64,000 nucleotides of DNA from NCBI GenBank assembly GCA_963924565.1, contig OZ004608.1:33542001-33606000 (forward strand). Direction: 5' to 3'. Each line of letters begins with the position of its first letter. Positions within the stretch are counted from its first letter, which is position 1. The stretch comes from Ascidiella aspersa. Its lineage: Eukaryota. Below are positions 6,664-62,144 of this stretch, one piece after another. Made by a program: the position numbers and the translations under genes. A model generated the notes under the pieces. The model saw nothing but the letters and a program-made list of their open reading frames with translations, searched no databases and had not been told where the DNA came from.

Positions 6664-9112
<2,449 letters not shown>

Positions 9113-12147: not shown

Positions 12148-15100
12148 TTACGCCTCGTCCACTTGACAATGCTTTTCGGTTTTGGCGCTAGACACGATCA
12201 TCATTGCTTGCAGAATCCTCCAGAACCAGTAGACGTTAATTGCGTCGATAATAACTCCACCACCGAGGAATCCACTAACCACAGCGAAGTTGAGCCTTTC
12301 GAAAATGAAAAAAGTAATCGTTTTGTTTTAGTTTTAGTTTAACTAAGATACACTTTCTGTATACTTTTCTTATTATCTCGACTATTGCCAAAAGTTCGCC
12401 ACGGTTATGTTAAAACGTAATAAGAATATCAAAGCCCATACAGAAGTAGGTGTCATTTTGAACGTTTCGAATATCTCTTTATTTATGTTCAACACGATGG
12501 TGAAACCTACTTCTGTATGGGCTTTGATATTCTTATTACGTCTTACTACAACCTCCAACCATTATGCTCCAAGGTTATGTTAAAGTTTCGCGTTTTTTTA
12601 GGAAACAAAAACATTTTTTAGAGTTTTACTAATATCAATTAAGTTTGTAGTTGTGCTTTGTAAAACTAGAAGTTATGCTTTGTGATGGCCATATCAAAAA
12701 CAAAACAAAAACTGTTAAAAACAATGAAAGTGTTAGTGTCGTATCTGTTAGTACAGTGCTTCTCAACCTTTTTGCTTTCGTGGCCCATTTACGTTGCAAA
12801 AAAAGTCTGTGGCCCAATAAATATTTATGGAAGAAATAACTGTAAAATAGGTTTAGAACAAAACACAGCAGAACTTACTGCAACGTACCGGACAACCCTA
12901 ATACAAATTACCTGTGAAATCCTTCGGTGCCCAAATCTTGGTAAACGAAGTAGTAATAGAAAGGAAGGAAAAGGACTCGTGTGATGGTGAAGAGCAATGT
13001 ACCGACGACATCGTTTATGAGCCGCATTCTTTGGCTAAATATATCCATTTCCTTGTAAACGCCTCTGCGAAAAGAGAAGACCAGTGTAAAATGACAAGTT
13101 AAAGCAAATTATCTTTGGCGATCGCCCTTAACAACTTAACTCCCTTATGGAATACAATAAAACCGGAAATGGTTTAAAACGAACGACATCTGTAGCCGTA
13201 TTGGCCGATATAAGAAAACACATTATCCAATACGGTAAACTGAATGCATCATTATATAATATCATAAATTGTCAGTGTTGTAAATAAATCCTTATGAATT
13301 GACTTAGGTCCCAGTCAAGTCATTTGTAAAATAACTAAAGGCATAGTAAAGTCTTTTAAACAATGAGTTCCAGTCAAAGTCATTAGTTGCTCAAGTAAAG
13401 ACAAGTTAACTCCAAGTGAAATCATCGATGTAAAAATAAAAGGCTTAACTATTACAATCGGTAAACTTTACCGATTATGAGGAAAAACTCAACCAAAAAA
13501 TAACGAAAAACACCATACCAAGCTATTTAAACGCAAAAAATAAGATAATTTCCCTAATTGTATAAAAAAAGTCGTCGACTTAAGTCATTACAACACTGGA
13601 AATTGACCTCAACTTTTGTCGCTATTTGTTCTTTGTTGTGTTTTTGCAAATTTGCGAGTCGTGCAAGTAAAAGCATTCATTGTAAATAAGATTTAACGCA
13701 ATATTTGCTCACCTCATCAGTACGAAGGGCGTTGAAAGTTCCGTCACCAGCCTTAGGACTGCAAAGAAGGTACAAGCCTGGTACACCTGTGTGCAAAAAG
13801 AGTCAATTAAAAACCTCTACGTTTCATAAAACAGGCTTTTTACGTTTAACCTTCATTTCACGCTTATGAAGCAACCAAAAAAGTTTCGTGAAACAGATCA
13901 TTAATATTTAACAATACACAACTCACAAAAAGCTGGAAACAGTATTCTGGTTTGAAAATGTCATCCAAAGCATTTTATTGATATTAAATACGTTGTGTTT
14001 CATGTTCCAGAAATACTAAATTTTACAGTTATTAGTCTTACCACTTGCAGTAGGTAGACGTAAGTAGCCACGCTATGGTGGACGTAAGTTAATAATGGTG
14101 GGAAATCAGCATACTGCAGCAGAAACAGGTCTAAAAAAACAAACAAAAAGCTACACTTGCAAGTATTTCAGCAACGACAGGAGATCTGCAGCCTATTTTA
14201 TTACAGCTTACCAGCTACAAAGAACGCTACGCATGCGGAAATGAGTGCACCAGATTGCCAGGAGTAGCCCCTGTCGATAAAATTGATACATCGGTTAGTA
14301 TTTAAGGAATTTCTCGTGAAGATTTCACTTCCTTACCATAAATGGTCGCTTTGTAATTTGGCGTCCGTGGAAATTTGATACAGCGCAGCCAATGAGCAGC
14401 ATGCCGAAAAAATGATTCCAGTGACTCTGTAAACGACGGTCGAAAGCAATTCATATCGCTATTTATGTTTTATTAAGTACACTTAAAAAAGTATTTCGTA
14501 TAATAGTCTGTATTGCAATAAAAATATAAAGCTAGAACGATCGCTAAAATCATCATTTTTTTAGGATTTTTTTTAATGGTTTGGTTGATATATATTTTTT
14601 TAATTTGCTACGAAACCTAGTGATTGTTTCCACCATCTATGGTTTTAATTGGTGTTCAGCAGTAAGACCAAAATGGAAATAAAATGTAAGTGGAATAAAA
14701 CTTGAATCGATCCAATATCAAAATCAGACCAACAAGTAAGAACTAAGTCAAAACAAGGCAAAAATTAAGCCCGTAAAAATATTAGTCAAGTGGCTAAAAC
14801 ACGGCACGAGGCCAAAATGAAAGGCGCCAAAATGGCCGCGTTAAACCGTCTAATGCTCCATCCATAGGGTTATATAGGTCTTGTTTATTCCCGCTTAAGT
14901 TTGCTTGTGTGACGAAGCACATACAGCATAACCAGAAAGTATACTAGGCACTCCCACTACCCAAAAGCGCTGCAACCAAAGAAAAAATATTATTTGCAGG
15001 CCGTATTATAACGCTGATGTGAAGGTGTACATGTGTTGGGATGCTAAATCAGACACAGAAAATGTATTACTGTAATTTATTTATTTGCTTAGTTAAATGC

Positions 15101-16067
15101 AAAACTCGAATTTTGGTATTGTAATACGGTGTTATCAGTTACAGTACTTGCATGAAAATAAAATTAGAATGGTTTTCCTATTTAAGCAATTCTGAAAGGG
15201 GTGGGAAAATTGGTTCGTGATTTGAACGAGGTGCAGTAAGGAAAATGTTTAGGAATCACTGGTCTAATAGGACATATTTTGCCGAAATATGATAAAAAAA
15301 AACAACTTGCCTGAAGCCCTTAAAGTTTTAAACTGCACCTCTAAAGGAACGTGTTATTGTTCACATCAGGCAATACGTAAACAGGTCCGCAAAAATGTTG
15401 AAAAAGAAATAAACGCAAAAATCCATAACATCGAGGACCGCAGTTAAACGTTGTTGTGTCTGTGGCCCGGGGCGGTGTATTCAGCAGAGCATTGTTGCGA
15501 AGTGTTTTTAGAGTTACCAAACCACAACATGTAAAACACAAAAATAACACTTTGACTGAAGTGAAAAGTATTTTGAGGGAGCGACATTATTAAATTCTTC
15601 AAATAACATTATTTTCAAGTAAAAACAAACAAAAAACAGCAGAGACTTAACTGTACATGCTTATTGCTTGTGTCCAGTGTTTTTAATGTTGTTTGCGGAA
15701 CCAAATTGGTTTGCTATATTTCTTTAACAGCCTATTAACATTTTGCCTACATAAGTAACTATAGAGCTAGATTTATTTTTAAATACTTTAACAAAATCGG
15801 TTCGGTGTATTAAAATATAGTGGTCAGCAAAGGCTAACATTAAAAGACTGATGCATAACATTTATCTACACCAACTGTCCACTCACAAAACAATACAAAA
15901 TCAGCAGCTCTTTACCTGGTGTTCTGTACAACTTTCTTTTTCTTATCCGAAGCAGCATAATTAGAAGGTGCCAAAAAGCAGCTAATTGTTGGCGACACTG
16001 TGTATGTGAACACCAGTACCCCAAAAGACAAAAGGCACATGCACAGTGATGTCACAATGTCAATCAT
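12148..16067 (-). CDS. TLCD4: TLC domain-containing protein, TLCD4/TMEM56-like, copy A (7 coding exons)
   Basis: Exons 15916-16067, 14337-14426, 14212-14270, 14042-14130, 13713-13786, 12912-13064, 12148-12295, all GT-AG and in frame: MIDIVTSLC...QNTR|VTGIIFSA...SDHLW|GYSW...D|LFLL...YVHHSV...|...RLVTELSTPFVLMR|...ITRVLFLP...|...IDAINVYWFWRILQ...EA*. Intron positions fall at the same motifs as vertebrate TLCD4. Confidence 0.9.
12415..12541. repeat. Palindromic interspersed repeat with a 37-bp perfect inverted repeat; related copies near 43430-43545 and 54405-54560
   Basis: acgtaataagaatatcaaagcccatacagaagtaggt and its exact reverse complement. The other copies share the arms and the adjacent tail (reversed and more degenerate at 43.4 kb). 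Confidence 0.8.
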
Positions 16068-19233: not shown

Positions 19234-22200
19234 TTAACTTTTTTTGTTCTTTGGTTTCGAGGAACCTAGGATAACTTGAAGTATCTTGTTAAACCAAAAC
19301 AAGTTCATGGCATCGACTACAAATCCACAGCCAAGAAATCCACTTTTCATGAGAAAGTTTAATCTGTTCGGCATACGGAATTTTTAGATTATGCCAAAAA
19401 CAATAAGCACAGTTGTTATATATTATTACAATCCAACACTACTACAAGTTAGGGTTTGGGTGGGTCAAGTAATATTGTTAAATGTTTTCCTCAAAATTCA
19501 TTTATTCCTTGCCATTTCCATTTTGACAACTGGTTTCGTTACTGTGACAACAAAGTGGTAGGATTCTAGACCAGCGTCTTTTTTATTATTTAGATAAGGG
19601 CTTGTACAAAATTTGTTTAGTTTGTTTTATGCAGTTTGTAACCTTTAACGTTAATCAATTTTCTTTAAATCACGAATATACCTGTTGAATGATTCCGTGT
19701 ACATTACGTGATATACGTGGTAGTTGTAATAAGGGATAGCCAGAATCCTCGTTATGGTAAATAACACCATCCCAATGATATCGCTTATCTGACGAGTCCG
19801 TTTGCTGCATAGGTCGAAGTCTTTCCATACACCTCTGGGTAAAAACAATATTTCTTAGGTGTTTTGAGCTTTGTGTTAGGCAAGTGGTGTAGCAAAATGC
19901 AGCTCGCTTTTATGTGGCTCTATTTCATTACGACACCAATATTTGACATTATGGCAAACATAGTAGACACGATCCGGTACCAAATGATGTCATTACTATG
20001 CCAAATAAACGGTCCTATCGACCAATGTCAATTTTTTAAGGCCATTACATTCAGGGTTCCTCTGCCAAATGACTTTCGTGCTGTGAAACTCATTTATCTT
20101 CCAAAGGTGATGTCAAATTTCTAATAAAATATATTTTTGGGAGTAAAATGGCTGAGTTGGATCTCAAACATTATTAAAATTGCTGACGAGTTCCGATACC
20201 AGGACCTGGATTTATGCATTTTTTAGTAAATCCCTCAAGCATACCCTATAAAACCTATATGATAGATCTTACTTGATCAGCAAAAAAGGTGTTGAAATCT
20301 CTGACATGAAGCGAAAGATTCCGAAAAAAGCGCACTCCTCGTTCATCTACGTAACAAAAAATAGTGGGTAATATATCAGCATTACAAAATATCAGTAACA
20401 AAAATTTGTACCATTTTAACGGGATTTATTTTTAACGTAACTTAAAATAGGGGCATTTGGACCCCGGGCGTTGGACCCTACTCTACTCAAAACTACCCAG
20501 GTACCGCGTCCCACAGGCGCATGCGCACTTGCAAGTTCGGAAAGCCGAATGCTGTAAATCGTGTACAAGCTGTCAAATTGTGAAGTTGTTTGACAGCCGT
20601 ATATCTGCATTGCTTTATACCACGCTATTTTGGTTACGAGAATGGGTGGAATACAGGGTTATGGAGTACAAGCATGACTCGACGGAAATGATTAAGTTGA
20701 CTGTACACTCAAAAATCTCGCGACCCAAAAGGTTGGGGTTATTTTATGTTCTATTTCGTTAAGCGGAGTCGGATTCGGGTTGTTTTAGGCCAGGGGTCGG
20801 CAACCTTTTCTAGTCGCGGGCCAAAACCAAACTGAGAAAGGTATCTGCGGGCCGCACAAAATTATAACTAAGAAATGTGTTATTGAAATGTTAGAACAAC
20901 TATGAATCAGGCGGGCATCGGATATTTTTTGGACTTAGATACAGGGAGTCGAACCGTTTGACTTTTCCGGTTCAGGTTCGGTTCGGGTTCAAGGATGTTT
21001 TCGAAATCCGGTTCAGTTCCGGTTTCGGTTCGGAGGAATTTAAAAGTTCCGGTTCAGCTCCGGTTCAACTATCGTTATTTCAAAACCGGTTCATAAAGTT
21101 CTTGTTTAGATACAATATAATTTGCGTTAAATCTCAAAATGTGGGTCGATAAATGTAGAGAATAATCTTTGAATTGTAAGTCATTTAATCTAAGTTACGT
21201 GACTTAAAACAGCAACTCATTATTAAAATATCTAAAAAATAAAAAATCAACGATTTTTTCATTCAATATTCACATTTTTTTCATTAAATTTCGAACATGA
21301 CGTAATTTGACTCTGTAAAATAGAAGTTGCGACGTCACGCTGGAGCGAACCGCTTTTGTTTACAGGTTCGGGTTCGGTTAAGGTTCAGGTACTTTCAAAA
21401 TATTCGGTTCAGTTCCGGTTCGGCTCCTTAAAATCTTATAAAATCCGGTTCAGGTTCGGTTACGGTTCGGAAAAAACTGACCAAAAACCGGTTATAAAGT
21501 TCCGGTTCGGTTCCGGTTCGACTCCCTGCTTAGATACGTATTTAATTACATTTACCGAGACAGTAAAGTGTTGACGCAAAGCGCAAAAAAAACGTTTGCT
21601 TGGTTAAAAATTCGAGTTGGCACGTTCGTCATCCATACTACTGATGAATAGTGTAATAAAACTACATCGAAGGAACGCGATAACACTTAAAGTTAATCTA
21701 GCTCAGTGTTTGTTAATCGTTATAAGTGAAAGCGCACCTGGCGAGCGAAGCGAGTGCGATTTTTTTGGGGCTATACCGGTATTTCTTTTAATTTCTTGCA
21801 AGCATTTATTACATTGCCAAAAATAAAAAATAAAACAATGTTAAAAAATATATGTCCAATATTTATTATTATGTTTTCCGTTTTTGCGCGACGCACTTGG
21901 CAACCTTCTACAGCGCAACAGTAAAGAAACGCTGATTTAGTTGAAAAGGCAGCATCAAAACGTAAACAAACCGGATGTTCGCGCGAAGCGCGAAAATTTT
22001 TCGCAATTACGTTCGGCGGGCCGGGGCCGTAGGTTGCCGACCCCTGTTTTAGGCCGACTCCTCAGCCTTGAAATTAACCAACGGAATTACATACCCTCGT
22101 CGCTCCCTTAAATAAGGACCTAAAACTCGTACGGCCACATTAACTTTTATGTCAAAGGCTTATAGTTATTAGCAGCTCAAACTTACCAAAACAAGGGAAT

Positions 22201-23612
22201 AAATATATATTCCCAAAATGTGATGAACGTAGGTTAGAAATGGATCAAATACGGAAAATCGTAACAGGTAGAGATCTAAAATTAAAATTAAAAAAGGTAC
22301 AACACAGATGCTTAACTAAAGTTACACTGCTCAGTTAAGACTATTTACATTTATCATTAAATCTATCAATGTTTTAGTCTACAAATTACCGTGTATTTGC
22401 TTTATTCTATTAACATTCAGACATTACAATAAGAAAGTCATAATTGCATATCTGGATAACAAAGCACAAATTAGCTGACCTGCTATAAAAAATGCTATAC
22501 ACATGGAAACTAGTGCTTCACCTTGCCAAGAAAAGCCTCTGCAAAAAGGTAATATATTTTAACTTTTAAACAACTTCACCTTAGACCACAGGCATGATAG
22601 CACACCTATTTTTATAAAAAAAAAACACAGATTAAGAAAAATTTAAACTTAAGGGCGTTTGACAGTAAAGTACATCAATTTTTTTTTCTTATCAACCACC
22701 CACAACTACAAGAAATGTAATCTTAACGTTTGCGCATTTTCTTACCTTACAAAGTCGTTTTGTAAATTGACGTCCGTACAGATCAGGTAAATAGCAGTCA
22801 AAGAACACGAAGCGGAAAAAACGATTGCGGTTATTCTGTAGATGTAAGGCGATGGTTATTAGTTGCAGAAAATTGGCAATTTAAAAGTGGTGCATATTAA
22901 AAAGCGTTATATTATACAGGGTCTTGACATTCTATAGGGTAACTTTGGGCCTCGAGTGATTGTGTGCCGCATAACTTTTTGTAATTTTGAAAAATAAGTT
23001 ATTTGTATCAGAAATAGGCATACACGCAAGCATTTTAGACATAGATAAGCACCACCCATTACAAATTAATCAAATTGAGAACATTTACATATAGTTTGTC
23101 GTGCGTTAAGGGCAAATGAACTGACTCATATTGTTGTTCTGTTAAAAGTTTGCCCCGGGCCAAAAATTTGGGAAACCACTGACTTAAATGGTTAAATAAA
23201 AACTTTCCCAGACCTTTGTAAAATTTCCAATTTGTCACCAATATGCTAAACGTATAGGACATTTATAGTATATCAATAGTTTAGTCTTTTAAAAATATTG
23301 TTAGGAAGAGCCAATTACCATTTGCTTTGTTGTAAATTTCGCCGCAACACAGTGAAAAAGTTAACTTTATCTTATGCTTATCACACTATGAACCAAAAAA
23401 AACAGCTGCATGTCCGCATTTGGGGTTCTTATGAGTCTAGCCAAATGAAATTCCCGAATCTACCTTGTGTTCTGTAGATCTTGCTTTTTCTTTTCCATCT
23501 TGGCGTAAACAGGTGCGAAGAAAGTGCATATGAGAGGGGCCAGCTTAAAATTAAACACGAGAAATCCGATTGCCATGCAACACATGCGCAACACTATGGC
23601 GTAGTGCAACAT
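19234..23612 (-). CDS. TLCD4: TLCD4/TMEM56-like copy B (7 coding exons)
   Basis: Exons 23464-23612, 22746-22835, 22480-22538, 22187-22275, 20273-20346, 19682-19834, 19234-19363. Spliced ORF: MLHYAIVLR...YVHHIL...FRFMSEISTPF...VDAMNLFWFNKIL...KS*. Confidence 0.9.
20791..22046. mobile_element. hAT-type MITE with a nested MITE, in copy B intron 4
   Basis: TIR caggggtcggcaacct / aggttgccgacccctg; perfect TSD ttttaggc; relative at 55248-56001. Confidence 0.9.
20942..21528. mobile_element. hAT-type MITE, GGTTC-rich family, copy 2 (nested)
   Basis: TIR cagggagtcgaaccg / cggttcgactccctg; perfect TSD cttagata. Confidence 0.9.
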
Positions 23613-25173: not shown

Positions 25174-28100
25174 TTAGCTTTTTGTGTTCTTTGGTTTTGA
25201 CGAACCTAGTATAACTTGAAGTATCTTGTAAAACCAAAACAAGTTCATGGCATCGACTACAAATCCACAGCCAAGAAATCCACTTTTCATGAGAAAGTTT
25301 AATCTGTTCGTTATAGGAAATTGTTAACAAAATACAATCCAACACTATTTTTGATAATATTTTTGGGCGCTGGTCTAGAATGCTACCAGATTTTCGTCCG
25401 GAGGTTTATATTGCTAACATGATTTGGGTTTAGGTTAGGGTGCGAGTAAATGTTTGGGTTTGATGTGTCAGGTATTTATTTTCCCATATTTATTTATTTA
25501 TTGCAATTTCAATTTTGACAACTCGTTTGGTTTCGTATAAGTGTTAGGATTCTAGACCAGCGCCGTTTTTATTATATTGCTACACGCATGTACGAAATTT
25601 GATTAGTTTGTTTTCTGCTGGTTGTAACCTTAAATATTATTAAATTTTCGTTAAATCACGAATATACCTTTGGAATGATTCCGTGTAAACCATTTGATAT
25701 ACGTGGTAGTTGTAATAAGGGATAGCCAGAATCCTCGTTATGGTAAATAACACCACCCCAATGATATCGCTTATCTGACGAGTCCGTTTGCTGCATAAGT
25801 CGAAGTCTTTCCATACACCCCTGAGTAAAACCAATGTTCTTTGTTTGTTTTTTTGTAACGTTATGTATGTTAGGCGAGTGGTTGGCAAAATGCGATTTGC
25901 CAATCATTTCGTGTGGCTCTGTTTCATTCCGACGCCGATATCTGTCATTTTGGGAAAACCTTTATAATCGGACGAGAGTTGGATCATTTATATTTTACAC
26001 GAATTCGGTTCAATTACAACTACTTTATTAAATGTTTCATTACATTAATAACTGTAATTAATTACATCAATTACAATTTTCGGCATTGAAACTTCGATTT
26101 TCTCAATATCAATGTATTGAGCCAAAATTTTAGCAAATTGCATTACAATTACATTGAAACCTGTAATTAATTGCATGACTTACAATTACAAATTACGATT
26201 GATCCAACTCTGATACCCATATAAGGACCTGACTTCATGTATCCACTCCGATCGATATTATAGGAAATTCCTTAAGAACAACCCAATATAGCCAACATCT
26301 TACCTGATAAGCAAAAAAGGTGTTGAAATCTCTGACATGAAGCGAAAGATTCCAAAAAAAGCGCACGCCTCGTTCATCTATTCATAAAAATACTGCGTAA
26401 AATAAGCATTACTAAAATATCAGTAGAAAATCCAATATGTCATCGGGATTATTTTTTTAACGTAAATCTAAATAGGGGCAATGTACTGGAAATTAACCAG
26501 GGCTGTGGGGTCGTAGCCGAACACGGGAGTCGAAGGAGTACGTTTATTTGGATAGCTTCGGACTCAAAAAAGACTATACTTGAGAAGTTGAGACTACCCA
26601 CGTCCCGCGTCTGATAAGCGCATGCAAGTGCAAATTTGGAACCGGTAAGCCGCATTCATGCTGTAAATCGTATACACATTGTTAATCGCACACACCTATT
26701 GTAGATGGGTGAGCTGTATGACAGCCGTATATCTGCATTGCTTTATACCACGCTATTTTTGCTACCGAAATGGGTGGAATACAGGGCTATGAAGTCCACG
26801 CAAGTCACAGGACTCGACGGAATCGGTTAATTCGGCTCTAGACTAAAAAATCTCGCGGCTCAAAAGTACGGGGTGACTTTATTTTTGATTTATTCGATCG
26901 GAGTCCCACTCGGGTTGTTTTAAGCCGACTACACAGCCTTAAAATTAAACTACGTAATTATATGTACGGTACTAATCGCTCCCTTATAACTAACTAAAAC
27001 TCGTACGGACTTATTGACTTTTATGTCAAAGTCTTATATTAGCAATTAAAACTTACCATAACAAGGGAATAAATAAATAATCCCAAAATATGATGAACAT
27101 AGGTAAGAAATGGATCAAATACGGAAAACCGTAGCAGGTAGAGATCTAAAATAAAATACAAATTGAAAAAGTTACAACCAGGAAGCTTAACTAAAGTTAC
27201 ACTGCTCGGTTACGACTATATCCATTTACTATTGAATATGTTTTAGTCTACTATAACAAACCACACATTGGCTGACCTGCTATAAAAAAGGCTAAACACA
27301 CGGAAATGAATGCCTCCGCTTGCCAAGAATAGCCCCTGCAAAAAGGTAATATATTTTTACTTAAAAACGACTTCTGATACCACAGGCATGATAGCACACC
27401 TATTTTTATAAAAGTACCGATAATGAAAAAGCAACCTTAAGCGTTTCGCGTTAGGGAACATCAATTGCTTTTATTCTAATCAACCACCCACAACTACAAG
27501 AAATGTGATCTTAACGTTTGCGCATTTTCTTACCTTACAAAGTCGTTTTGTAAATTGACGTCCGTACAGATCAGGTAAATAGCAGTCAAAGAACACGAAG
27601 CGGAAAAAACGATTGCGGTTATTCTGTAGATGTAAGGCGATGGTTATTAGTTGCAGAAAATTGGCAATTTAAAGCTGCATAACAAATTATAAAGCGTTCT
27701 ACTAAAACAGGGATTCTTAAACTGAGGGGGCGACAGGGGTTTGCAAAGGGCGCGAAAGATTGTTCGAGATTTTTTTGTTTCAATCTATTCAATATACAGT
27801 AAGGTTTAGCTAAATAAGGTATTGTGTACTAACCCCACTATAAAACCAAAACATTTGACATATACAGCTACATGTCTGCATTTGAGGCTCTTAAAATTGG
27901 GATCACATCAATGTAATGAAACATGCACACACATATGTGTGTTAACCACTGTGATCTAGCCCTTCTGGAGCTGCTTTTTGAACGATTCCGGCTTACGTAT
28001 CATTAGTGCACCGAAAGCCATCGCAGACTCACCGAATCTGTCGATTAATGCTGCCATGTTGCATCATTGATTAACAGATTCGGTGAGTTTGCGATGGATT

Positions 28101-31300: not shown

Positions 31301-31409
31301 GATAACACTAGGCGACCAAAAACGTTCGAAAATAACTGCTTTGAAGCTTAAAAGGCGCTAACCATAGAGTTGACTATCATAGCTGTCTTTTGTCGTGTAA
31401 CAACAGTGT

Positions 31410-46422: not shown

Positions 46423-46545
46423 TCAACTAATTGTGCAAACTTGCTCGCCCAGATGAACGGTTAACTGTAACCAAATTACAGATGCAGAAACCGTTGTTAA
46501 CAGCCTGTCTAGGCAAATAATCTCTACGTTCTGCTTTTTGCGAGA
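46423..46545 (-). pseudogene. Degenerate tandem duplicate of the 5' part of copy F exon 1
   Basis: Reads KQNVEIICLDRLLTTVSASVIWLQLTVHLGEQVCTIS* versus F QQNVEMFDLGRLLATVAVSVVWFQLTVHLGERIC. The ATG is replaced by ATT and the frame ends in a stop. Confidence 0.8.
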
Positions 46546-48877: not shown

Positions 48878-51800
48878 TTATTTTACGTAGCCATGATATT
48901 TCATTTTTTTCAAAAATACGTTGTAAACGGCCTGTATCATTATCGTAAACCAAACGAAGTTAAAGAAGTCCAGTAATCCGCCGGTCACAAGCAACAGAAC
49001 GAGGTCTGTGACGGGTAAGCTGAAAATATACAAAAAAAGCGATTAAAATATTTTCCGCCTCTCTTTTAGCGATACAAAATCAAAACGAGGGGGGGTTGGA
49101 TCTAGTTTTTAGGATACCTGTTATTATTGACACATTTTATTCGTTTGGTTACAGCAGGTTGAAAAAAATTGGGAAAAATACAGGCATAAGTTGTAGATCA
49201 GGGCTGTCCAAACCCAATGTGGGCGAAAACATCGATTTGCTTTTAATAAACTTTGTTCTACACTAACGTCAGAAGAAATGTTCTCAAAAATATACAGAAA
49301 GAGAAAAACGTATTAAAAATAACAAACGATTTTATTAATACAGGTTAAAAAGAATTATTTCAGTACTTATGTCAGTGTTTCTCAACCTTTTGCTCGCGGC
49401 AACTGGAATACTAAGCGAAAAAAAAACAGCGAACTTTGGCGACCCGATTCTATTCACCGAACGCTTTATAAGGGAACAAAACATAAGACAAATAGCATAT
49501 ATAAGTTCGAATTTAATTAATAGAAGTCACGACTTTGTATTTATCCGTCAGTTTTCTTAAAAGTTTAAAAAAATTTCGCTCTGGAACAGGGGCGGGCAAC
49601 TTTTCCAATTGGCGGGCCAGATAAGGGAAAATGAAGTACTTGGCGGGCCGGATTAAGTACTGCCAAATCTTGCATGTTTTGTCGCATAATGGCGGCTAAT
49701 GTTGTACTCTTTACACACGGTCACACTTTCATTGCACATTAAACATACTAATACTTCCCGAAAGAATAAACTAAGTGCAGAACTTAGTAAACCGAAAATC
49801 AGTTTGTTTGGAATTTGATATTATAAGATAACAATATTTCGCTGCTAAAAGCATCATAAGTATAATGATTTTAGTAGCGAAATGTGGCAAAATAAAGCCG
49901 CGGGCCACAATATCAATTAAGGCCGGAAATTGTCTGCGGGCCGCACAAAATCCCGTCGCGGGCCGTATGTTGCCCGCCCCTGCTCTGGACTGATCTCAAT
50001 AAATGCAACTAAGTAAACAACTGCAGTCAGCGGTTCCAACAAACCAAACGGTCACCTAATTTTAGGCCGCGACCCATGAGTTGAGAAGCACGGTGTTATG
50101 CAGTCTACTGTATACTTATCCTGCAATCAAAACGCAAAAAAATACTGTTATTGCTGATCTAGGTAATCCTGTGGTTATTTACTGCGTTCAGCACTATTGT
50201 CTAGTTTCTCATAAACTTTAAAATAAATGTGTGTCCTGTTTGGTGCGTGGGTTTAGATTATTCAACTTTACACATTTGGTTGCAAAAATGTTTTACTCGC
50301 TTTGGTTTAGTAAACCTAACATTGATTAAAAAACTGAAAAGAAATCTAACATTGATTAAAAATTATGGTGTTTTTTTTTGATGACCAAATAATTGCAACA
50401 CGCACATATCATATACCCTACCTGGGCCCGTCTTTTGCGTTGAATAAACTGTACATTTGAATGTAGTAGTAGGGTAACGGCAATATGCGGCAGGCAAAAA
50501 ATACGAGAATGGAAAACGCGCCAATGGTAATGCGAGATGTCTCGCTGCCTACTTCCAAAATATGCAGGAACGTCCTGAAAAGTAGAAATAGGGATAGAGT
50601 AGGAGTTTAGGGGGTTCGAAAATACAATTTAAATGAGATGAAAAAGAAAAACAGATAACTGAATCTTTATTATCCGTGTTTAGTGGCAGTTTGGGGGTTT
50701 CGAAAATACAATTTAAATGACATGAATACGAAAAACAGATAAATAATTCTTTATTATCCGTGTTTAGCGGCAGTTTGGGGGTTTTGAAAATACAATTTAA
50801 ATGACATGAATACAAAAAACAGGTAAATAATTTTTTTTTTATTATACTTGTTTAGTGCAAGGTTTTGAAAGTTTAACTAAACAGCACAAGGTTTTGCAGT
50901 TTTTAACTAAAATTTATAATTATCGTTTTATGGCGATTACAAAAAACGATTTTAGCAAAGTGAGCGTGATAACTTTGGGGAGTATTACAAACCTCTAAAT
51001 TTGGTTTGACTGTTTTTGAAGTTTATGTTTTACTGATTTTTATGTGCCCATAATGTAGTGGTTCCCAACCTGGGGGTCGCGACCCCAAAGGGGGTCTCAA
51101 GGGGTTATCTGGAGGGTCGCCGTGTAATATTTGATAAAGAAAACTTCATAAGAAATAAGCAATATGAACGAAACGTTTAGCAGCATAGAAGGAGCAAAAG
51201 CAACCGCCAGTCTAACATTTGTGTTAATGTGGCTCTTGCTGCAGTAGACAAGTCGTGTTCATGACGTCACGATTACATTTTTCAATTAATGAATCAAGCG
51301 TAGCTTCAATCAAACCATGTATAATAAAAATGAATAGACGCTTAAACCGTAACTTTATAGCTAGTTGTGAATACTTAAATCTGAACATTTTAGCCAACTT
51401 TTGGTACAATCCGTCCTGATTTTTCCCCATGTTAATTTTGCCAATTAAAAAAATGTGTTTTTTATTGACTGTGGTTTACGTATCATACACTATAATTGTA
51501 GGGGTCGCGCAAGTTATCGAAAACTTAAAAGTGGTCGCGAGAAAAAAAGGTTGGGAACCACTGCCATAATGAAACCCAAAATCACCCCAAGAACAACTCT
51601 TTAGCACAGTGGTTCTCAACCGCCGGTCCGCCAAATATATTACAATCTTAAATCTCAACTACAAAATGCAAGATGTTGAAGGTGCTTGTCCATCAGATTT
51701 CGAACTTCGCCAGCTTCGTAATTTGCAACATTGTGACGTAACATAGAGTTAATGGTCTACCTTGGACTTTATCGTACGACACAATGCAGGTGTTGTGCCC

Positions 51801-54150
51801 AACTGTTTAAAATTAGGCTACTGATCGTTTAAGTCGTAAATTTTAGGACCAGTTGTACATACGTATGATATAAAAAAAAAACAGCAGCCAATTGCTCAAT
51901 GAATTTAAGTTTCCACTCTTTGCTTTTAAGTTGCATACTTTTGTCATATTTGCATTTTGGGTTGATTTTGATTTTTGAAGTTCCACCGGTCCGCAAAATT
52001 TGTTTTGAAATTTTACCGGTCCGTAAGATAAGGTTGATAACCACTGATTTAGCATATATGATAACAGTGTTTACACCCCAAATATAAAACCTTAGGATAA
52101 AGCATTTTATCACACATTATCTTACCTTATACATACCAATGGCGATGAAATTTCGCAAATCAGTCTAAAAATGCCGAAAAATGTGTACACTTCGCAAGCC
52201 TTTAACAGAAATGGTTGTTAAACTTATTGACGTTTTTCAAGAAAAATTAGTAAGACAACACATGAAGTAAATACCATGTTCCTTAAAATCATGACTAACG
52301 ACACAAAATGATGATGAAACACGAACTTGATCCCTCTAGGTAGCTTGGTCATGATGTACGTTTCTGAAACAGAGTGGCTAGAATCATATCACAGTTTTAA
52401 AAAGTGTGTTTGTTCATTTTTTAAGTCGTTGATATGGTTCTGATTCGGATTGACGGACAAATTAGCTGTAGAAAAATAAACACAAGTGTATTTAAAATGA
52501 ACGTTTAGTGGCATTTTAACCTATAGAACGTCTGTTTAAAGTTCCACGTATATATATTTATTTTGTTGACTGTTATTTAAGTTTATCTATTTTGATTAGA
52601 GCATTCAGAGAATGTAGATACGCCCGCCCAATCTCTCTTATTTGATAAACAAACGTTGGAAAAAACACAAACGGACATATTCATGCAAATGTAAATACGG
52701 TAATCTATAATATACACGATTTAAAAGGAAGTTATAACTATCATGTTTTACCTGCGACTATGTAGCTGACGACAAATATCATACAATTCTCAGAAAGCGC
52801 AGAGTAGCCCCTATAAATGTACATGCAAAATTGATTTGTGCGTTAAAGTTTGTAATGTATTGAAAATTAAAAGAACTTACCATATGTGGTCCGAGTGGAT
52901 TGCATTGTCAAACCAAAGTGTGTAAAGGGCGAAAGTAGCTGCCAAGAGGGAGTAAATTGAACATGCAAGACTGTAAAAACATAAGAACGTTAACTTTATT
53001 AATAGGCAATTAACAACAAAAGCCAACACTCGCAATTACTAAACAAGTAAATGTGAATACGCATTTATCGTTAAGCATAATTGGGAGCTAACAGTCAATC
53101 GTATACCCAAGATGTAGGACTGGTAAACGTTTGTTTAACTTTGAAGTCCGGGCCAATTATTCGCTCGCTTTGCACCAGGCACTGATTTTCAGGTTTGTTT
53201 ATAGTTAGGTTGAGTGTTTGTGCGTAAAAGTTCACGCGTGTTGAGTGCTTGTGCGTAAAACTTTTCGCATGTTGAGTGTGTTTGTGCGTAGACGTGCCAA
53301 ACACAACCATTGTACACATTGTTTGTAGTATATAAGACCTTCAAGTTTCAGTGATCAAAAAAAGCAAGGAGCGGCACCAAGGCGAGACTCACAGTCGAAC
53401 AAAGCATAATAAAAAGTTCGATGCCATCAATGTTGGGTTTAATCGGTAATGAATTTTGCGTCACATTATGCCCCATAGCACGCTTTGCTACACACAGCGT
53501 ATTTTGAAGCGATGTTTTTGCGAGCATGTGCCTGTGGATTGATAAGACTTCATTATTCTTTATCGCATTTACTTTCGCTTGTGTTCTACTCCGTGCATTT
53601 TAATTGCTTTTAATTCTACTTTGATCTGATAAAGCACGGTTATGCGAAAGCTTATCGAGCATTCTATACAATTTGTCTTTACATAGGGCCACCTGATCAC
53701 CCTATTGTGCACAATGAATCGATTCCCCTGCAGTTCGAAAATTCAACCACTCTTGGGTCTTGGCGCCTATCAAGCATGAGTTAATATGTTGACGTATGTT
53801 TCAACGTCATAAACGTTTGGTGTGTTCATACGTTCCATTAAGTTATTTGCACTACTTTAAGCTCAAGAACATATTCCTGGGCAAATTGGCTCAACATACC
53901 AGCATATAACTAACGCTAACATAGCGTGTATTAATCAAATTTTAGCACAAAAAATAATAGCGTATAAACCTACATAGAAGTTTACCTTATCATTTTCAAA
54001 TTACCTGTTTCGTACAATTAGCTTCTTATCGCCATCGAGAACATCGTACTTGCTCGAACATTTCCTGCAAATCCACTCCGACCAATACGTAAACCACAAC
54101 CAAACCACTGAGCCCGCGCCTATAACTAGCAACCTCGCTACGTCCAGCAT
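48878..54150 (-). CDS. TLCD4: TLCD4/TMEM56-like copy G (7 coding exons)
   Basis: Exons 54005-54150, 52881-52970, 52752-52810, 52275-52363, 52126-52199, 50422-50574, 48878-49019. Spliced ORF: MLDVARLLVIG...VFHHHFV...FRLICEISSPL...FFACRILPLP...LLDFFNFVWF...VK*. Confidence 0.9.
49373..50093. mobile_element. hAT-like MITE (outer, degenerate) with a nested MITE
   Basis: cagtgtttctcaac ... gttgagaagcacgg; TSD degenerate (acttatgt/tgttatgc). Confidence 0.6.
49587..49982. mobile_element. hAT-type MITE (nested)
   Basis: TIR caggggcgggcaac / gttgcccgcccctg; TSD ctctggaa/ctctggac. Confidence 0.85.
50575..50860. repeat. 84-bp tandem repeat, ~3.3 copies, abutting the acceptor of G exon 6
   Basis: aatacaatttaaatga recurs at 50621, 50705 and 50789. 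Confidence 0.8.
51056..51563. mobile_element. hAT-type MITE
   Basis: TIR tagtggttcccaacc / ggttgggaaccactg; perfect TSD ccataatg. Confidence 0.88.
51607..52046. mobile_element. hAT-type MITE; partial inverted relative near 11750-11995
   Basis: TIR cagtggttctcaacc / ggttgataaccactg; TSD ctttagca/atttagca. Confidence 0.8.
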
Positions 54151-56225: not shown

Positions 56226-59200
56226 TCAAAGTTCGATGTTCTTCCTTTTTACTAGACTTTTGAATACGACTGGAAGCATCATGGAGAACCACGTTAGGTT
56301 GATCCAGTCCAACATGCCGCCCCCAACCAGCCAAATAACAGTGGGAATCGAGGACATGCTGTCAATCACATAAAGAAATGTAAGAATGGTTATGCTGTCA
56401 GTAAGAATAGTTTATTACAGGGGTCGATACGGCCGACTTGCTATATTCCCCCGACTATTCATATTTTGCAAATGATTCTTAAATACGGTTAGTACACCAA
56501 AAGCCACGATCCCGGTATGACCGGAGGTCGTGAGTTCGAACCTCACTGCAGGCTAGTTTTACGAACAGGATGTAGTTAGCATTGGCGTATAGTTGTTTCT
56601 CGAGTGCTCCTCTTTAAGCCTGCATAGCTCAGTTCGTAGAGCGACGGTCACTGCTTGACCGGAGGTCGCGAGTTTCAACCTCACTGCAGGCTAGTTGTTT
56701 TTCTAGCCTGCCTTGCCTGCATCACTGTGTAACAGATTCGGTGAGTCTGCAATGGCTTTCGGTGTACTAATTATACGTAAGCCGTAATCGTGGGTCAAAA
56801 AGCAGCTTCAAAAGGGCAAAATGTTTTTGAACACATACATGGGTGTATCGTTTATTGTAAAATATGGTTAATTATACTATACGAGGCAAAATGTTTGCCA
56901 GATACAAAACTAAGCTAAATTTTGTTGAAATATTAAACTAAAGGGCAATTTTATAAAGGTCAGTAAAAATAAAAATACGAAATTCTTATCTATATCCTTC
57001 GTTTTACAAAAATAAAGTCAAGGTCAAAATAAAGTTTATATCCAGTCAGCAATCTCCAATCGTTAACAGTTATCTTGTCCGCGACTACCAGGTATGCTGC
57101 TCCTAAAATATTTACAGGGCTTTTTAACTAAAAGCAATGCCATAAATAAGCTTTTGTCATTGAGCCGCGAATGGTCTTAATGTTGTGTCGTGCACGTTTT
57201 ACTGTACTAATACTTGGGTCCTAAATAGCACTTCAACGGGACAGCAAGGGTTGAAAATCATCTAAAGTTTGGGGATTTTTATTTGCAATCTTAGGCTGTT
57301 ATCCATGAATAAACATACGCAGGATATACCAACTGAATATAACAGTTCAAGGCAACACCATAGACTAGAATTTCATGTATGCTTACCGGTCCTTGGGTAA
57401 TTTTTTTATTTTTCACTGGCAGTAACAAAACATTAGGAAACACTGTAATAGACCACTAACCTAGATTTACCGGCTTATATAGTGTTCTGTGTTAAGGATT
57501 GCCTACAACAAGTATAGGATGTTTGCAAAACAATAAACCCATATTACGTGTTCTTACCGATTATAGTCTTCCGTGTTGAAAACGTCATAGACCTGTGCGT
57601 AATACCAGGGTAGCGAAAGTACGCGACAACACATGAAAAGAACGAAGGCTAATATGGCAGTAACTTGTCGAAAATTTGCACTTGCGATTTGAAGCCGTCC
57701 AAGAAAGTACCTAAACGTAACAACAAAATTAAATTTGTATTTTGTATGCTGAATAATGAAAAAGTTCCAACAAAATCACAAATGCTTCATACGTTTAATG
57801 ATTATGAACTAGCAACTTTCAAAGGTTACGCTTACGTAATATATTTTGTAGGATTAGTTTGCACTGTATTTCTCGTATTTTTCTATACAGATCAGCTACT
57901 TTAACTTGCAAAGCGAAAATATAATCCTGGCGTTATGGCCCTGGTTTGCTTTCCTAAAAAACGTTTTTGTTTCGATTAAATTTATTCCATCTTGAATAAT
58001 AAATAGGAGTTTCGTATAACGGCCCTACTTCAATTGCTTATAACTCATGATGTATTCAACCGTCTTAATAATTGCTTTAACAAACTTTTTATGTGTTTTT
58101 TTGACAGCCTATAACAGCTATAGTGTCGAAGGCCCCACAGTTTGTCAAATGGCAATAATAGCGAGAAATGTGCATATCTTTTATCTGTCCTCAAAGAGTC
58201 ACATCCCTCTCTAAATTGGTAAATAGCTGTTTTTTTCCCTTTGTCGCCTTTTCTTTAACTCCGAATGTAAAACAGGTGCCTTAGGCTAACTTATTTTAGA
58301 GCGCCAAAGTATGACGTCATATGGTGTGTAATTGGCAACCTTTCTTCCCGGCCCGCCACAACATTTTAGCTTCTCAAGTGGCCCGCTGTAAAACATAATT
58401 ACCCACCTCTGGTCTAAACGTATTGACATATCTACATTTGGTTTGCTGGCTCGAGTCTTTGTAATAAATACTCTGTAATAACTTTGTATGTGTACGCTTA
58501 CCTCGAACAGACAAAAGGCGATGATATTTCGCCTACGATTAAGTTCTCACGAGCAATTCGAGCAATAGGCGTTAAATAATAAAAAGGGACTGCCTAACCA
58601 CATCAATTTACCCCAAATGTGGTTTCCTGATTTATCGAAATATATGCTTTAATCCAGGGGTTCTTAAACTTTTTTTACCGCGGACCCTAAAATTTTTTTG
58701 GGGCCTTGCGTGGACCACGGTAGGGAAAAAAAATTAAAAATGACGTCATAAATTGGCGTCACAATACAAATTAACTTCATAAATCTGCTGATTTCGGTCC
58801 AAAAATGTGAAAGTGAAATGGAGTCTAAAAACATACAGTGCTAAACCATTTTATTATTAATTAAACTGTTTTCTTCGAGAAAATGGTAATTTTAAAATAT
58901 ACACGAATATTTCAATTAGGCCTTCGTGGACCCCCTAAAACTAGTTCACGGATCCCCAAGGGGTCCATGGGCCCCAGTTTAAGAACCCCTGCTTTAATCT
59001 CAACTTTTCATGTCTCTTACCTCGAACAGACAAAGGGCGATGATATTTCGCTCAGCGTTCGGGCGACTCCAAAATAAGCGCAGCTCTCAGAAACCTGAAA
59101 GTGAATAAAGTTTAAAGCACTTCAAATACAATTACTAAAGTAAGGACCGCCGGTTTAACGTACCATATTACCAAGTACCAAAGCCACCACAACAAAGTGG

Positions 59201-60588
59201 TGCTGGTACATCAGCTTCGTGACGGACGGCATTCGCGTCAAGAGATATGTATCTAAAATAAAGGCACCATTAAAGCGTTTTAAGCTTAAATCAATACTTG
59301 GCTGGGTGGGAAAACGGTATATTTTGCTGAATTATTTTTACGATTTTCTTGGAAGACATATGTTGTTGCAGGTTTTCAGTGACAAGGAGCAATTAAGCCT
59401 TCCTGTGTTTCTTTCTTTAAAATTGGTATTCGATTCTTTCGTACCCTCCAGCTGTTTGGTTAAATTGCCACAATATATAATTTTCGCCATTGTGTTGGCT
59501 CTATATCCAAAACAATATTACTAGAAAGTTGTTATGTATTTTTGACAGTAAGTCAATATACATTTTTACAATGGCATTAAGTAAATTTGCATTCGGTATT
59601 TATCCAAGTCTAGGCTGCATTGCAATGGGACTCGACAGCAAACAGTTATCCTAAATATATAAAATCTAATCATTTAAATCTACAATGTTCTTTAAAAAGG
59701 CCGCAACTTTTATATAGGCCTGAAATGACTAAAACGACATGATTTAAGAAAAAAAAATTTTACCTGCTACAATATAGCTGACAACAAACATCAGACAGAA
59801 CTCTGAACGCCATGTGTAGCCCCTAAAAACGAAAATTGTAATAGGTTATTATAAAGAAAAAAGGAATAACAAGCATGGTCAACTGCTGACTTGTACTTAC
59901 CAGATGCGGTTCGTTTGAATCTGATCATCGAACCAGAAGGCATATACGGCGACAACGCTGACGCAAAACGAGTATATCGTTGTGGTTAAGCTGTGAAGTA
60001 GCAAAATAATGGTCTGATAAATAACAAAAAGAGAACAAATGGTTGCCGTTTTGATTGTAGGCTTAAGGTGGACAAATTTAACGATTAATTTTAAATCCTA
60101 TTTACAACCCTTTAAAACACCTAGGTTTTTAAGTAACACATTTTATTTGCTGGAAATCTCGTTCATTAAAATAAGTTTTTAAGACAGAACTATATTCGTC
60201 AATAAACTTGCGTTGGTTTATTTAGGCCAAGGCTATTAACATGTTGTTGCTACCAGGCATACTGAGAAGAAGTTATTTTAGTTCTGATTTATTTTATCGG
60301 TCAAAGAACTGATTTTAAGTTAAACTAAGACTGTTTGTTAAAGTACAACTATTTAGTATAAAAAAAACGAAAAAAAACATTATTTTTAACATAATTTTTT
60401 CCAATAAACGCACACTCGAACTAATTAACTTATTACCCGCTTCTAATTTGAATCTGATGCTTCTCGGATAGCGCCTTATACAGCTTGTTGGAAACCCGGC
60501 TGCAGATCCGTTCAGCGCAAACCTGTGTAAACCAGAGCCAGAACAAGGCTCCTGCCCCTATGTAAAGCAGCCTGCTTGTGTCCAGCAT
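56226..60588 (-). CDS. TLCD4: TLCD4/TMEM56-like copy H (7 coding exons)
   Basis: Exons 60437-60588, 59901-59990, 59764-59822, 59164-59252, 59021-59094, 57558-57710, 56226-56358. Spliced ORF: MLDTSRLLYIG...YQHHFV...ARTLSEISSPF...MLDWINLTWF...EL*. Confidence 0.9.
56618..56691 (+). mobile_element. tRNA-derived repeat (SINE-like), second full copy
   Basis: gcctgca-ta-gctc-agttcgta-gagc-ga-cggtc-actgctt-gaccg-gaggtc-gcgag-tttcaac-ctcac-tgcaggc, followed by the same 3' body as the 42.9-kb copy. Confidence 0.7.
58655..58991. mobile_element. hAT-type MITE in H intron 5
   Basis: Perfect TIR caggggttcttaaact / agtttaagaacccctg; perfect TSD ctttaatc. Confidence 0.9.
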
Positions 60589-62001
60589 TGCTACGGGTGT
60601 CAATTTGCTTTGAACAAAGTTGCGGACGCAAGCAGTTTGCACACGCGATGCCACAGTGCACTCCTAGGCCTACGGGTGCAAAGTACGAGACAATTTTTTG
60701 TTATGCTAGGCTGCGCAAACAACGTGATTTACTTCTTCACACCTTACATCAGTTATTCTTAAACTATTTGCCGCGGCACAGTATGTACCGCTTTTAGAGA
60801 TTCCTAAAAGAGAGGTACCGCTGAACTATTTAGAATTTAAGAAAATAAACTAATTTTATTATTCATAGACAAGAAAGCAAGCGTGCCAGATTTAAATCAA
60901 CAATTTCATTCGGAAAACTGACAATAATATTATATTTATATATAAATGCCGTGGCGTTTACAGACGGCGTTTGTCAATTTTGGCAATATTGTTTTGTAAA
61001 ACGGAACGTGCCGCGAACTTTTTTTGATTTTCCTGGTGCCTAAGGCAAAAACACAAGAACTGCGTAATTAAACGTCTGGCGCCGCGCCCTGTTTAACATC
61101 ATTTTTCGGGACCCGTGTCTTAATAGGTTTAAATTGCTGCAAACCCAATTGTTTTCATTGGTGCTTTTAAAGTAAAATAATCTGAATATTTCAGCCAGGA
61201 TTTTCGACTAATACAGCCAGCATTTTTGGACTAATTAGGGCGTTTAAATGCAAAATGTCGCTAATTGGATTTTCTCAGTAATTCCTTTGCAGCCCCATTG
61301 CTAACTCGTCCCGCCCCCTAGTTTAAGGACCCCAACACTAACACATTTTTACTAGAAGAAACGTTTTAAACTTCCAAATATGCGCATAAGGGTTCACATG
61401 AAGTCGATGTAGTGTTCTACTGTAACAAAATATCAAAAGCTGTTTGTAAATGATTGTAAATTACACAGTGTATCTTCCGTTGCTTGTGTTTCAATCAAAT
61501 TTGTCGTTACTGCATTAATTCCCGTTACAATGAGCTACAACAAATAAACTCGCTACATCAGTGGTTTACAAACTTTACCTACACGCGTACCATTTTTTGT
61601 TGTATACAATGTTCTTGTACCTCCTATGTTTAGACAACTCGACTTCCTTACGAGAATACGATGCTTGGCCAATCTTCCTGTTTCGTTGGCAAATAGTGCT
61701 AGTTTTGTCCAAGCATTATCGACATACGTGCTTAGTAACTCGGACCTTGCCGGCATGATTTGTCTCCAAATGGCGTTTAAGCATCAAAAAAACAAGAAAT
61801 TAGAATTTAAAGTAGAATAGTACACATAAAATGTCACTTTCTACTTCATTTGAGTAAATTTAAACAGATCATTTACGATGATTTGGTTTAAATTTAATAG
61901 GCTGCTCGCGTACCACTACGGACACCTTTGCGTACCACAAGTGGTACCCGTACCATACTTAGGAAAAACGTTATAATTTAAAATCATTTGAACTGCTTCT
62001 T

Positions 62002-62144
62002 GCCATACGCTATCCGTCAGTGCTTCGTACAACTTCTTCGCTACTTTTCTGCAAACCCAAAGTCCAAACCGCCCAAACCTGTGTTAGCCATATGTGAACT
62101 GCTGTTCCCAAACCCAAGACCAGTAACCTTAACGCGTCCAGCAT
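62002..62144 (-). pseudogene. Orphan frameshifted exon 1 of a further TLCD4-like copy (G/H subgroup)
   Basis: MLDALRLLVLGLGTAVHIWLTQVWA, then after a frameshift WVCRKVAKKLYEALTD. Aligns to H exon 1 (MLDTSRLLYIGAGALFWLWFTQVCAERICSRVSNKLYKALSE). No downstream exons recognised. Confidence 0.75.

Follow-up and report, generated by a model that had tools for sequence, protein, structure and literature searches.

The minus strand of the 64-kb window of Ascidiella aspersa DNA analysed here carries, between positions 12148 and 62144, an array of genes that arose by ordinary local expansion within a known family. It comprises seven intact seven-exon genes (A, B, C, D, F, G and H), which encode proteins of 247-263 amino acids, together with one pseudogene (E) and two orphan first-exon relics. 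That the array represents the tandem expansion of a divergent branch of the TLCD4/TMEM56 proteins that is restricted to ascidians, and that its products may act in lipid acyl transfer, is as a joint reading probable. The first-pass annotation had singled the array out as a candidate for an undescribed system, which overstates the case: the copies are paralogues added to a known family, and tandem arrays are frequent in this genome.

Gene models, pseudogene and relic exons

The array extends from the stop codon of A (12148) to the ATG of the second relic (62144), and its components are as follows, with exons given from high to low coordinates.

12148..16067, minus strand: gene A, intact, 254 aa, open frame with six GT-AG introns, 49-50% identical to B and C; exons 16067-15916, 14426-14337, 14270-14212, 14130-14042, 13786-13713, 13064-12912, 12295-12148
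19234..23612, minus strand: gene B, intact, 247 aa, spliced model, intron 4 (1840 nt) with repeat insertions; exons 23612-23464, 22835-22746, 22538-22480, 22275-22187, 20346-20273, 19834-19682, 19363-19234
25174..28303, minus strand: gene C, intact, 247 aa, spliced model, 91% identical to B; exons 28303-28155, 27623-27534, 27335-27277, 27145-27057, 26377-26304, 25820-25668, 25303-25174
31410..35117, minus strand: gene D, intact, 251 aa, spliced model and a processed pseudogene on another chromosome; exons 35117-34969, 34445-34356, 33996-33938, 33665-33577, 33407-33334, 32621-32469, 31551-31410
35724..39016, minus strand: pseudogene E, a D-like copy with several frameshifts; exon 1 with an 8-bp deletion; exons 2-4 intact (38318-38229, 38021-37963, 37674-37586); exon 5 (about 37293-37236) with a 1-bp deletion and with its 3' third, the E-x-S-T-P codons and the donor destroyed; exon 6 (from 37141) with indels at its 3' end; exon 7 (35850-35724) with indels and an early stop
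40330..46371, minus strand: gene F, intact, 263 aa, spliced model, 65% identical to D; exons 46371-46223, 46108-46019, 45791-45733, 45245-45157, 44925-44852, 43368-43216, 40507-40330
46434..46540, minus strand: relic 1, a partial copy of F exon 1 (~80% DNA identity), ATG destroyed
48878..54150, minus strand: gene G, intact, 250 aa, spliced model; exons 54150-54005, 52970-52881, 52810-52752, 52363-52275, 52199-52126, 50574-50422, 49019-48878
56226..60588, minus strand: gene H, intact, 249 aa, spliced model, 42% identical to G; exons 60588-60437, 59990-59901, 59822-59764, 59252-59164, 59094-59021, 57710-57558, 56358-56226
62013..62144, minus strand: relic 2, probable G/H-type first exon, ATG at 62144, open for 44 codons

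The joined models, which were also used for the local alignments, the blastp comparisons with fetched proteins, the trees and the dN/dS estimates, have GT-AG borders at 42 of 42 introns and no internal stops. In each of the seven intact copies the internal exons measure exactly 90, 59, 89, 74 and 153 nt, are bounded by AG and GT, and do not vary in phase. When six-frame ORF pieces were compared all against all, exons 2, 4, 5, 6 and 7 each formed an eight-member family lying on the minus strand throughout, and these exon families, together with the splicing, bear out the earlier count of eight same-strand gene models, seven intact and one a pseudogene. The shared exon sizes do recur in every intact copy as had been claimed, but they are not a hallmark of the array, because the 59-, 74- and 153-nt exons are inherited from the family. 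Two conventional TLCD4-like genes that lie elsewhere in the genome, L008 (C2:26.5 Mb) and L007 (C5:31.9 Mb), have the same intron positions and phases as the array and both contain the 59- and 74-nt exons; L008 also has exons of 90 and 153 nt, whereas the corresponding sizes in L007 are 96 and 147 nt. Relative to TLCD4, exon 4 of the array genes is three codons shorter (89 versus 98 nt).

The two relic first exons that had been reported differ in standing. Relic 1, which is placed about 60 bp upstream of the true F exon 1, holds up through its DNA match to that exon, while relic 2 is only probable, since its likeness to exon 1 of G and H exists at the protein level alone (52% over 25-27 aa, E 6e-4 and 0.003) and it has no usable donor: the homologous position offers none, and the relic is followed by no other exons. 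For pseudogene E, none of the variants listed from the DNA reads of whole-genome sequencing run X6 is an indel at the exon 5-7 lesions. The array is flanked by a DNAJC25-like gene and then a FAF1-like gene, the neighbours that the first-pass annotation had named. A scan of the 64-kb window with Rfam returned a single tRNA and nothing else.

Family placement and duplication history

When the exons are scored singly against the TLC profile PF03798, whose curated cut-off is 24.6 bits, exon 6 alone reaches 15-22 bits over profile positions ~113-179 in five of the eight copies, and exon 7 of A reaches 15 bits over positions 171-197; the “Transmembrane protein 56-B” of Phallusia mammillata (UniProt A0A6F9DVE0) scores 95 bits on the same profile. 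In local blastp comparisons the array models match this Phallusia protein at 104-141 bits (E 1e-30 to 1e-45), named TLCD4 proteins of vertebrates and a starfish at 66-97 bits, and TLCD2 at no more than 40 bits. The array and Phallusia TMEM56-B form one clade with support of 100/99 on a long stem branch (1.41), and the TLCD2 clade is set apart with support of 100/100. The tree was computed without TLCD3, TLCD5 and CLN8, and it omits the long eukprot row and the ceramide synthase of an initial tree that suffered from long-branch attraction; a separate alignment of exon rows covered exons 6 and 7. The blastp scores and the tree support the TLC-domain, TLCD4/TMEM56-type identity proposed earlier, and among the families represented in this tree, which excludes TLCD3, TLCD5 and CLN8, the copies group in a single clade (100/99) instead of being distributed over separate ancient TLC subfamilies, which was the outcome specified in advance as contrary to the proposal.

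Phallusia TMEM56-B is, at 251 aa, similar in length to the array proteins and has in common with them the clade-specific replacements H71Y/F, G152E, L154C and N159I, but its identity with individual array copies is only 29-36%, and it is a single transcript-derived entry from a species for which no array is described. Its distance to each of the three subgroups of the array (A-C, D-F and G-H) equals the distance among the subgroups themselves, so the three subgroups may predate Ascidiella aspersa; an AU test (p = 0.47) leaves the Phallusia protein and the three subgroups as a polytomy. The earlier designation of the expansion as lineage-specific is consequently retained at the level of the ascidians and not at that of the species. 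A HMMER scan with an exon-6 profile gave 13 matches, of which half were low-complexity repeats and one was a full-length ascidian relative, and a homologue search started from Phallusia TMEM56-B found no protein beyond the query.

The best named relatives of the array are vertebrate TLCD4/TLCD4-B (TMEM56) and a starfish TLCD4-A-like protein, which are 22-32% identical to the array proteins over nearly their full length and have the same core of HH, E-x-S-T-P, R and D..N..W; vertebrates have one or two TLCD4 genes, as against the eight tandem copies found here. L008 and L007 are single-copy genes that retain the canonical TLCD4 residues and branch outside the array clade, and L008 groups with the metagenome protein jgi71 (support 96/92).

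Amino acid identity is 91% for B/C, 49% for A/B, 65% for D/F and 42% for G/H, compared with 22-33% between subgroups, so neighbours are most alike, in agreement with what had been stated previously. The three old subgroups arose by repeated unequal local duplication, and the array contains duplications of several ages: the three subgroups themselves, then the splits of A from B and C, of D from F and of G from H, and then the recent duplications that produced B/C and D/E. Across introns and spacer, the units of B and C align colinearly at 72-86% DNA identity; they also have a common tract that is 100% identical, and gene conversion between them is ongoing. These identities, the lesions of E and the colinearity of B and C bear out the birth-and-death process with local duplication that had been suggested.

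Conserved core and candidate function

All seven intact copies keep HH, D86, D117 (E in G), R161 and E165-x-S167-[TS]168-P, as well as R204, P209 and D244..N247..W250, and this core is conserved despite the identity of only 22-33% between subgroups. Of the positions at which conventional TLCD4 proteins are invariant, six (H71, G152, N159, N172, W175 and K184, numbered as alignment columns) are replaced in all or most array copies, and several of these six are replaced in Phallusia TMEM56-B too, which places the array on a divergent sister branch rather than within orthodox TLCD4. An AlphaFold model of Phallusia TMEM56-B (pLDDT 87.7, pTM 0.85) has ceramide synthases as all of its eight best PDB matches, at TM-scores of 0.61-0.71, and a search with a TLCD4 profile recovers solved CLN8 at E 1e-14; a phmmer search of Phallusia TMEM56-B against PDB sequences gave no significant match, with CLN8 and CerS absent at E <= 10. 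By proxy of this modelled relative, which is 29-36% identical to the array copies, a multi-pass helical TLC fold is predicted for the array proteins.

Ceramide synthases (CerS6, yeast Lag1/Lac1) and CLN8 are the TLC-fold acyltransferases whose structures have been solved, and CerS, TLCD1 and CLN8 have each been found to be acyl-CoA-dependent acyltransferases. The array proteins have the catalytic His-His dyad in common with the ceramide synthases but, unlike the solved enzymes, lack a homeodomain and long termini. To our knowledge no enzymatic activity of TLCD4 has been established in any organism, and we know of few other TLC-domain proteins that still lack a defined reaction.

Acyl-histidine intermediates occur in CerS6, TLCD1 and CLN8, where the His-His residues are catalytic and the mechanism is ping-pong (PMC13661276). 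By analogy, the function of the array proteins would be acyl-CoA-dependent lipid acyl transfer or the modulation of ceramide synthases. Each copy would be a multi-pass membrane protein of the ER or Golgi with a ceramide-synthase-like TLC fold, in which the first histidine of the dyad may take an acyl chain from acyl-CoA and pass it to a lipid acceptor, and the divergence of the subgroups may reflect different preferences for acyl chain or acceptor, or different tissues.

The alternative that survives best is that the copies are non-catalytic TLC-fold partners which tune ceramide synthases or other lipid enzymes, in which case the tandem copies would serve as alternative regulatory subunits. 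In the one functional study, mammalian TMEM56 binds CerS2 by co-precipitation and alters hexosylceramides without a demonstrated activity of its own, a result compatible with a regulator no less than with an enzyme (PMC13147617). The genome also contains three intronless CerS-like genes whose products are possible partners, and the replacement of several TLCD4-invariant residues in the array points in the same direction. A pure binding role would not, however, obviously conserve residues that are catalytic in CerS6, TLCD1 and CLN8, and the dyad and the polar core persist in seven of seven intact copies at 22-33% identity, so that a purely regulatory array is unlikely, if still a serious contender.

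A stronger form of the acyl-transfer reading, which must be considered doubtful, is that the ascidian TMEM56-B branch has been neofunctionalised and that the subgroups are acyltransferases of differing specificity which make lipids peculiar to tunicates. If this were true, the array could serve as a natural test set for what TLCD4-type proteins do. The seven natural variants keep the catalytic core while differing at ~70% of other positions, and the set could help to map the determinants of specificity or, through comparative lipidomics, reveal substrates. Otherwise the array is a routine tandem expansion of a gene family.

Selection, expression and assembly

The intact copies are under purifying selection, with a dN/dS of ~0.2-0.3 where it is measurable (0.29 for B/C and 0.2-0.33 for D/F); in the older pairs synonymous sites are saturated and dN is 0.37-0.9. 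An intronless fragment at C1:3849467-3849790, 77% identical to nt 260-613 of the D coding sequence, joins exons 3/4, 4/5 and 5/6 without interruption exactly at the predicted D borders. This processed pseudogene on another chromosome shows that D-type mRNA was spliced as modelled, and at least one D-type copy has therefore been transcribed and spliced in this way, in past germ-line expression.

These results bear on the proposal that the array is mostly debris, its seemingly intact copies being untranscribed or decaying and functionless at present. The one pseudogene and the two orphaned first exons are what such decay would leave, and RNA reads over D and E are nearly nil: in the 6% of RNA-seq run X7 that was read, the interval 31405-37400, which takes in D and half of E, drew 19 reads and not a single splice joint. 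Seven frames of ~250 codons and all of the splice sites nevertheless survive while synonymous sites are saturated in most pairs, and this survival, the dN/dS values and the past expression of a D-type copy make the proposal very improbable.

It is scarcely credible that the array is an assembly artefact in which haplotypes or collapsed repeats have been laid in tandem, as the 91% identity of the B and C proteins and their one fully identical tract might suggest, given that B and C match at only 72-86% across introns and spacers and that divergence is much greater among the remaining copies. That the array exists as real DNA is borne out by run X6, which covers D and E evenly at single-copy depth, and by contigs from two further runs of the species, which carry the array stretch.

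Gene models, pseudogene and relics

Stop-to-stop pieces of the six-frame translation were compared all against all, and in this AT-rich DNA (window G+C 34-39%) eight-member families of pieces were recovered, on the minus strand only and in identical order across eight successive units. The pieces were scanned for AG...GT-bounded exons at the lengths named by the first-pass annotation, and exactly one fit in homologous phase was obtained for each of the 90-, 59-, 89-, 74- and 153-nt exons in seven units, while homology served to place the first exons, which run from ATG to GT over 146-152 nt, and the last exons. In the joined models of the intact genes A, B, C, D, F, G and H an uninterrupted frame leads from the ATG to the stop codon (247-263 aa), with GT-AG boundaries in all 42 of their introns (66-2708 nt). 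The exon scan and joined models bear out the array as it had been described, with eight same-strand units of common internal exon lengths, seven intact and one a pseudogene (E). The closest likeness is indeed between neighbours: amino-acid identity is 91% for B/C, 65% for D/F, 49% for A/B and 42% for G/H, compared with 22-33% across the subgroups A-C, D-F and G-H. Two relic first exons that had been proposed were also recovered, the second graded only probable because its similarity is confined to the protein level and the donor is absent at the homologous place.

Pseudogene and relic first exons
35724-39016, minus strand: pseudogene E, resembling D; four or more inactivating lesions
E exon 1: 8-bp deletion
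E exon 5: 1-bp deletion; 3' third and donor gone, removing the E-x-S-T-P codons
E exon 6: indels at exon end
E exon 7: indels
46434-46540: relic first exon, about 80% DNA identity to F exon 1, ATG lost
62013-62144: probable relic first exon of G/H type (E 6e-4, 0.003 to G/H exon 1)

Whole-genome reads (run X6) cover 31405-37400 evenly except for two repeat spikes, and the stretch is present in contigs of two further A. aspersa runs with point differences only; no indel variants listed from the reads fall within E exons 5-7. Genes B and C are colinear, introns and spacer included, at 72-86% DNA identity, a divergence too great for haplotypes. A tract of about 160 bp comprising exon 2 and its flanks (22708-22867 in B, counterpart around 27534-27623 in C) is 100% identical, and since the DNA around it has just 65-85% identity, it carries the signature of recent gene conversion. 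In the adjoining exon 3, at 80-90% DNA identity, 6 of 19 residues differ.

Family membership and age of the duplications

Database searches were made exon by exon, with joined models used only in local comparisons. Five of the eight copies match Pfam TLC (PF03798) through exon 6 alone, at shared profile positions and with E values of 1e-4 to 1e-2. When the seven exon-6 peptides were built into a profile and searched with HMMER against 1.8 billion proteins, one full-length relative emerged, the Phallusia mammillata protein P0027; it scores 95 bits on PF03798 itself, and its existing UniProt entry carries the automatically assigned name 'Transmembrane protein 56-B'. A further profile search, started from P0027, window exons 6 and 7 and a TLCD4-A-like protein of a starfish, brought up named vertebrate TLCD4, TLCD4-B and TMEM56 proteins. 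Local blastp gives each model 104-141 bits against P0027, 66-97 against named TLCD4 and at most 40 against TLCD2, which together with the exon-6 matches upholds the TLCD4/TMEM56-type identity.

The array is not the genome's sole TLCD4-type locus. The exon-6 profile found only the eight array copies and one fragment on contig C1 in the genome, while P0027 and the starfish protein, used as queries, led to two multi-exon TLCD4-like genes, L008 and L007, whose first exons were not found. These genes keep the canonical TLCD4 residues, and the array exon 4 is three codons shorter than theirs. Both genes have the array's intron phases and its exons of 59 and 74 nt, so the constant exon lengths of the array are inherited from the family.

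Other TLC-type loci in the genome
L008:4489-6620 (contig C2, about 26.4975-26.4996 Mb): TLCD4-like, exons 90/59/98/74/153 nt
L007:280-7660 (contig C5, about 31.853-31.861 Mb): TLCD4-like, exons 96/59/98/74/147 nt
L001:1176-1907: TLCD2-like intronless TLC gene, 243 aa, 58% identity to a Phallusia mammillata protein, 50% to one of Ciona intestinalis
L002:888-1955; C3:21353489-21354070; C3:21363256-21363837: three ceramide-synthase-like intronless ORFs; the genome scan gives open frames of 356-374 aa

The one ceramide-synthase-like ORF of the three that was checked (L002, 355 aa) combines a homeodomain with TLC; two of the three lie just 10 kb apart.

A maximum-likelihood tree (LG+C20+F+G4) was computed from 27 rows comprising the seven models, P0027, starfish and vertebrate TLCD4, two database proteins without names (jgi71 and lgn69, metagenome/Logan), L008, L007 and a TLCD2 outgroup. 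The seven copies and P0027 form one clade (support 100/99) on a long stem of 1.41 changes per site, separate from vertebrate TLCD4 (100/100) and from L008; the copies thus belong to one clade rather than to several ancient TLC subfamilies, in a tree built without TLCD3, TLCD5 or CLN8 sequences. Within this clade (A,(B,C)), (D,F) and (G,H) each have full support, and the tree gives no supported order among the three subgroups nor a place for P0027; monophyly of the window copies is neither rejected nor shown by the AU test (p = 0.47). Paths between subgroups (2.5-3.8) are as long as those from subgroups to P0027 (2.6-3.1), while the TLCD2 path from this genome to Phallusia is only about 0.8, which suggests that the three subgroups date from around the time when the Phallusia lineage split off. 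The proposal of a lineage-specific array would accordingly hold for the younger duplications, which alone are inferred to be specific to the A. aspersa lineage, and not for the three subgroups.

The array represents a known family that has expanded in tandem within a restricted lineage. A search of one literature library found nothing connecting TLC-domain, TLCD4 or TMEM56 genes with ascidians, and the value of the array, which is modest, lies mainly in providing a natural panel of variants for an orphan TLC protein.

Conserved residues, expression and proposed function

The dN/dS ratio is 0.29 for B/C (dS 0.15) and 0.2-0.33 for D/F; in older pairs synonymous sites are saturated and dN is 0.37-0.9. 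Each of the seven intact copies retains D86, G98, D117 (which is E in G), the H137-H138 dyad, R161, E165-x-S-[TS]-P, F200, R204, P209 and D244..N247..W250, while six invariant positions of conventional TLCD4 are replaced in the array, several of them likewise in P0027.

The C1 fragment (L006:5467-5790, equal to C1:3849467-3849790, plus strand) is an intronless D-type sequence with 77% identity to nt 260-613 of the D coding sequence. It crosses the 3/4, 4/5 and 5/6 junctions of the model without a break, and contains deletions and stops. Since it is intronless there while the introns are ancestral, it is a processed pseudogene, which shows that D-type mRNA was produced in the germ line and spliced as modelled. 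One 22-bp deletion takes out its HH codons, and its end falls exactly at the exon 6/7 border. In 6% of one RNA-seq run, 19 reads fell over D and half of E with no splice joints seen, a few of them at D exons 1-2 with mates oriented as expected of transcription from the minus strand.

The AlphaFold model of P0027, taken as proxy for the array clade, is confident and all-helical (pLDDT 87.7, pTM 0.85), and the eight PDB entries that match it best are ceramide synthases from yeast and human (TM-score 0.61-0.71); with a TLCD4 profile, the solved chain of CLN8 is found at E 1e-14. CerS6, TLCD1 and CLN8 transfer an acyl group from acyl-CoA to a lipid acceptor by a ping-pong mechanism, with a covalent acyl intermediate on the first dyad histidine (PMC13661276). 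This precedent and the ceramide-synthase-like fold favour a reading in which the array proteins would perform acyl-CoA-dependent acyl transfer with substrates specific to each subgroup. The main rival is that they are non-catalytic modulators of ceramide synthases, as suggested by the only functional study of TMEM56/TLCD4 reported, in which the protein localises to the Golgi, binds CerS2 and alters hexosylceramides, with no reaction assigned (PMC13147617).

Neighbourhood and repeats

The window lies at 33.54 Mb on contig C2 of the 308.6-Mb assembly. A DNAJC25-like gene lies directly downstream of gene A, on the array strand, with FAF1-type exons beyond it, in keeping with the FAF1-DNAJC25 neighbourhood named in the first-pass annotation.

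Flanking genes and repeats
7706-9112, minus strand: DNAJC25-like gene, DnaJ match 65 bits
220-1798, minus strand: FAF1-type UBA-like and ubiquitin-like exons, beyond the DNAJC25-like gene
20942-21534, 21674-22012, 4250-4782, 55530-55878: interspersed repeats, 76-78% identity between copies
35405-35604, 36205-36404: high-copy repeats between D and E, DNA-read depth spikes 5- to 10-fold
47653-48592: tandem duplication in F-G spacer, about 0.5 kb x2, 76% identity
40577-40852: tandem duplication just upstream of F last exon, 121-bp repeat, 2.3 units
50604-50836: tandem duplication in G intron 5, 84-bp repeat, 2.8 units
42909-42985, plus strand: tRNA-Ala(AGC), Rfam 42 bits and ARAGORN

Intron 4 of B owes its larger size (1840 nt, compared with 679 nt in C) to the interspersed repeats. 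Around 36227-36258 many reads step back by 21-32 bp, a sign of a minisatellite that varies in length. The tRNA lies within F intron 6 on the opposite strand, and may belong to a tRNA-derived repeat, since pieces near it recur in the window.
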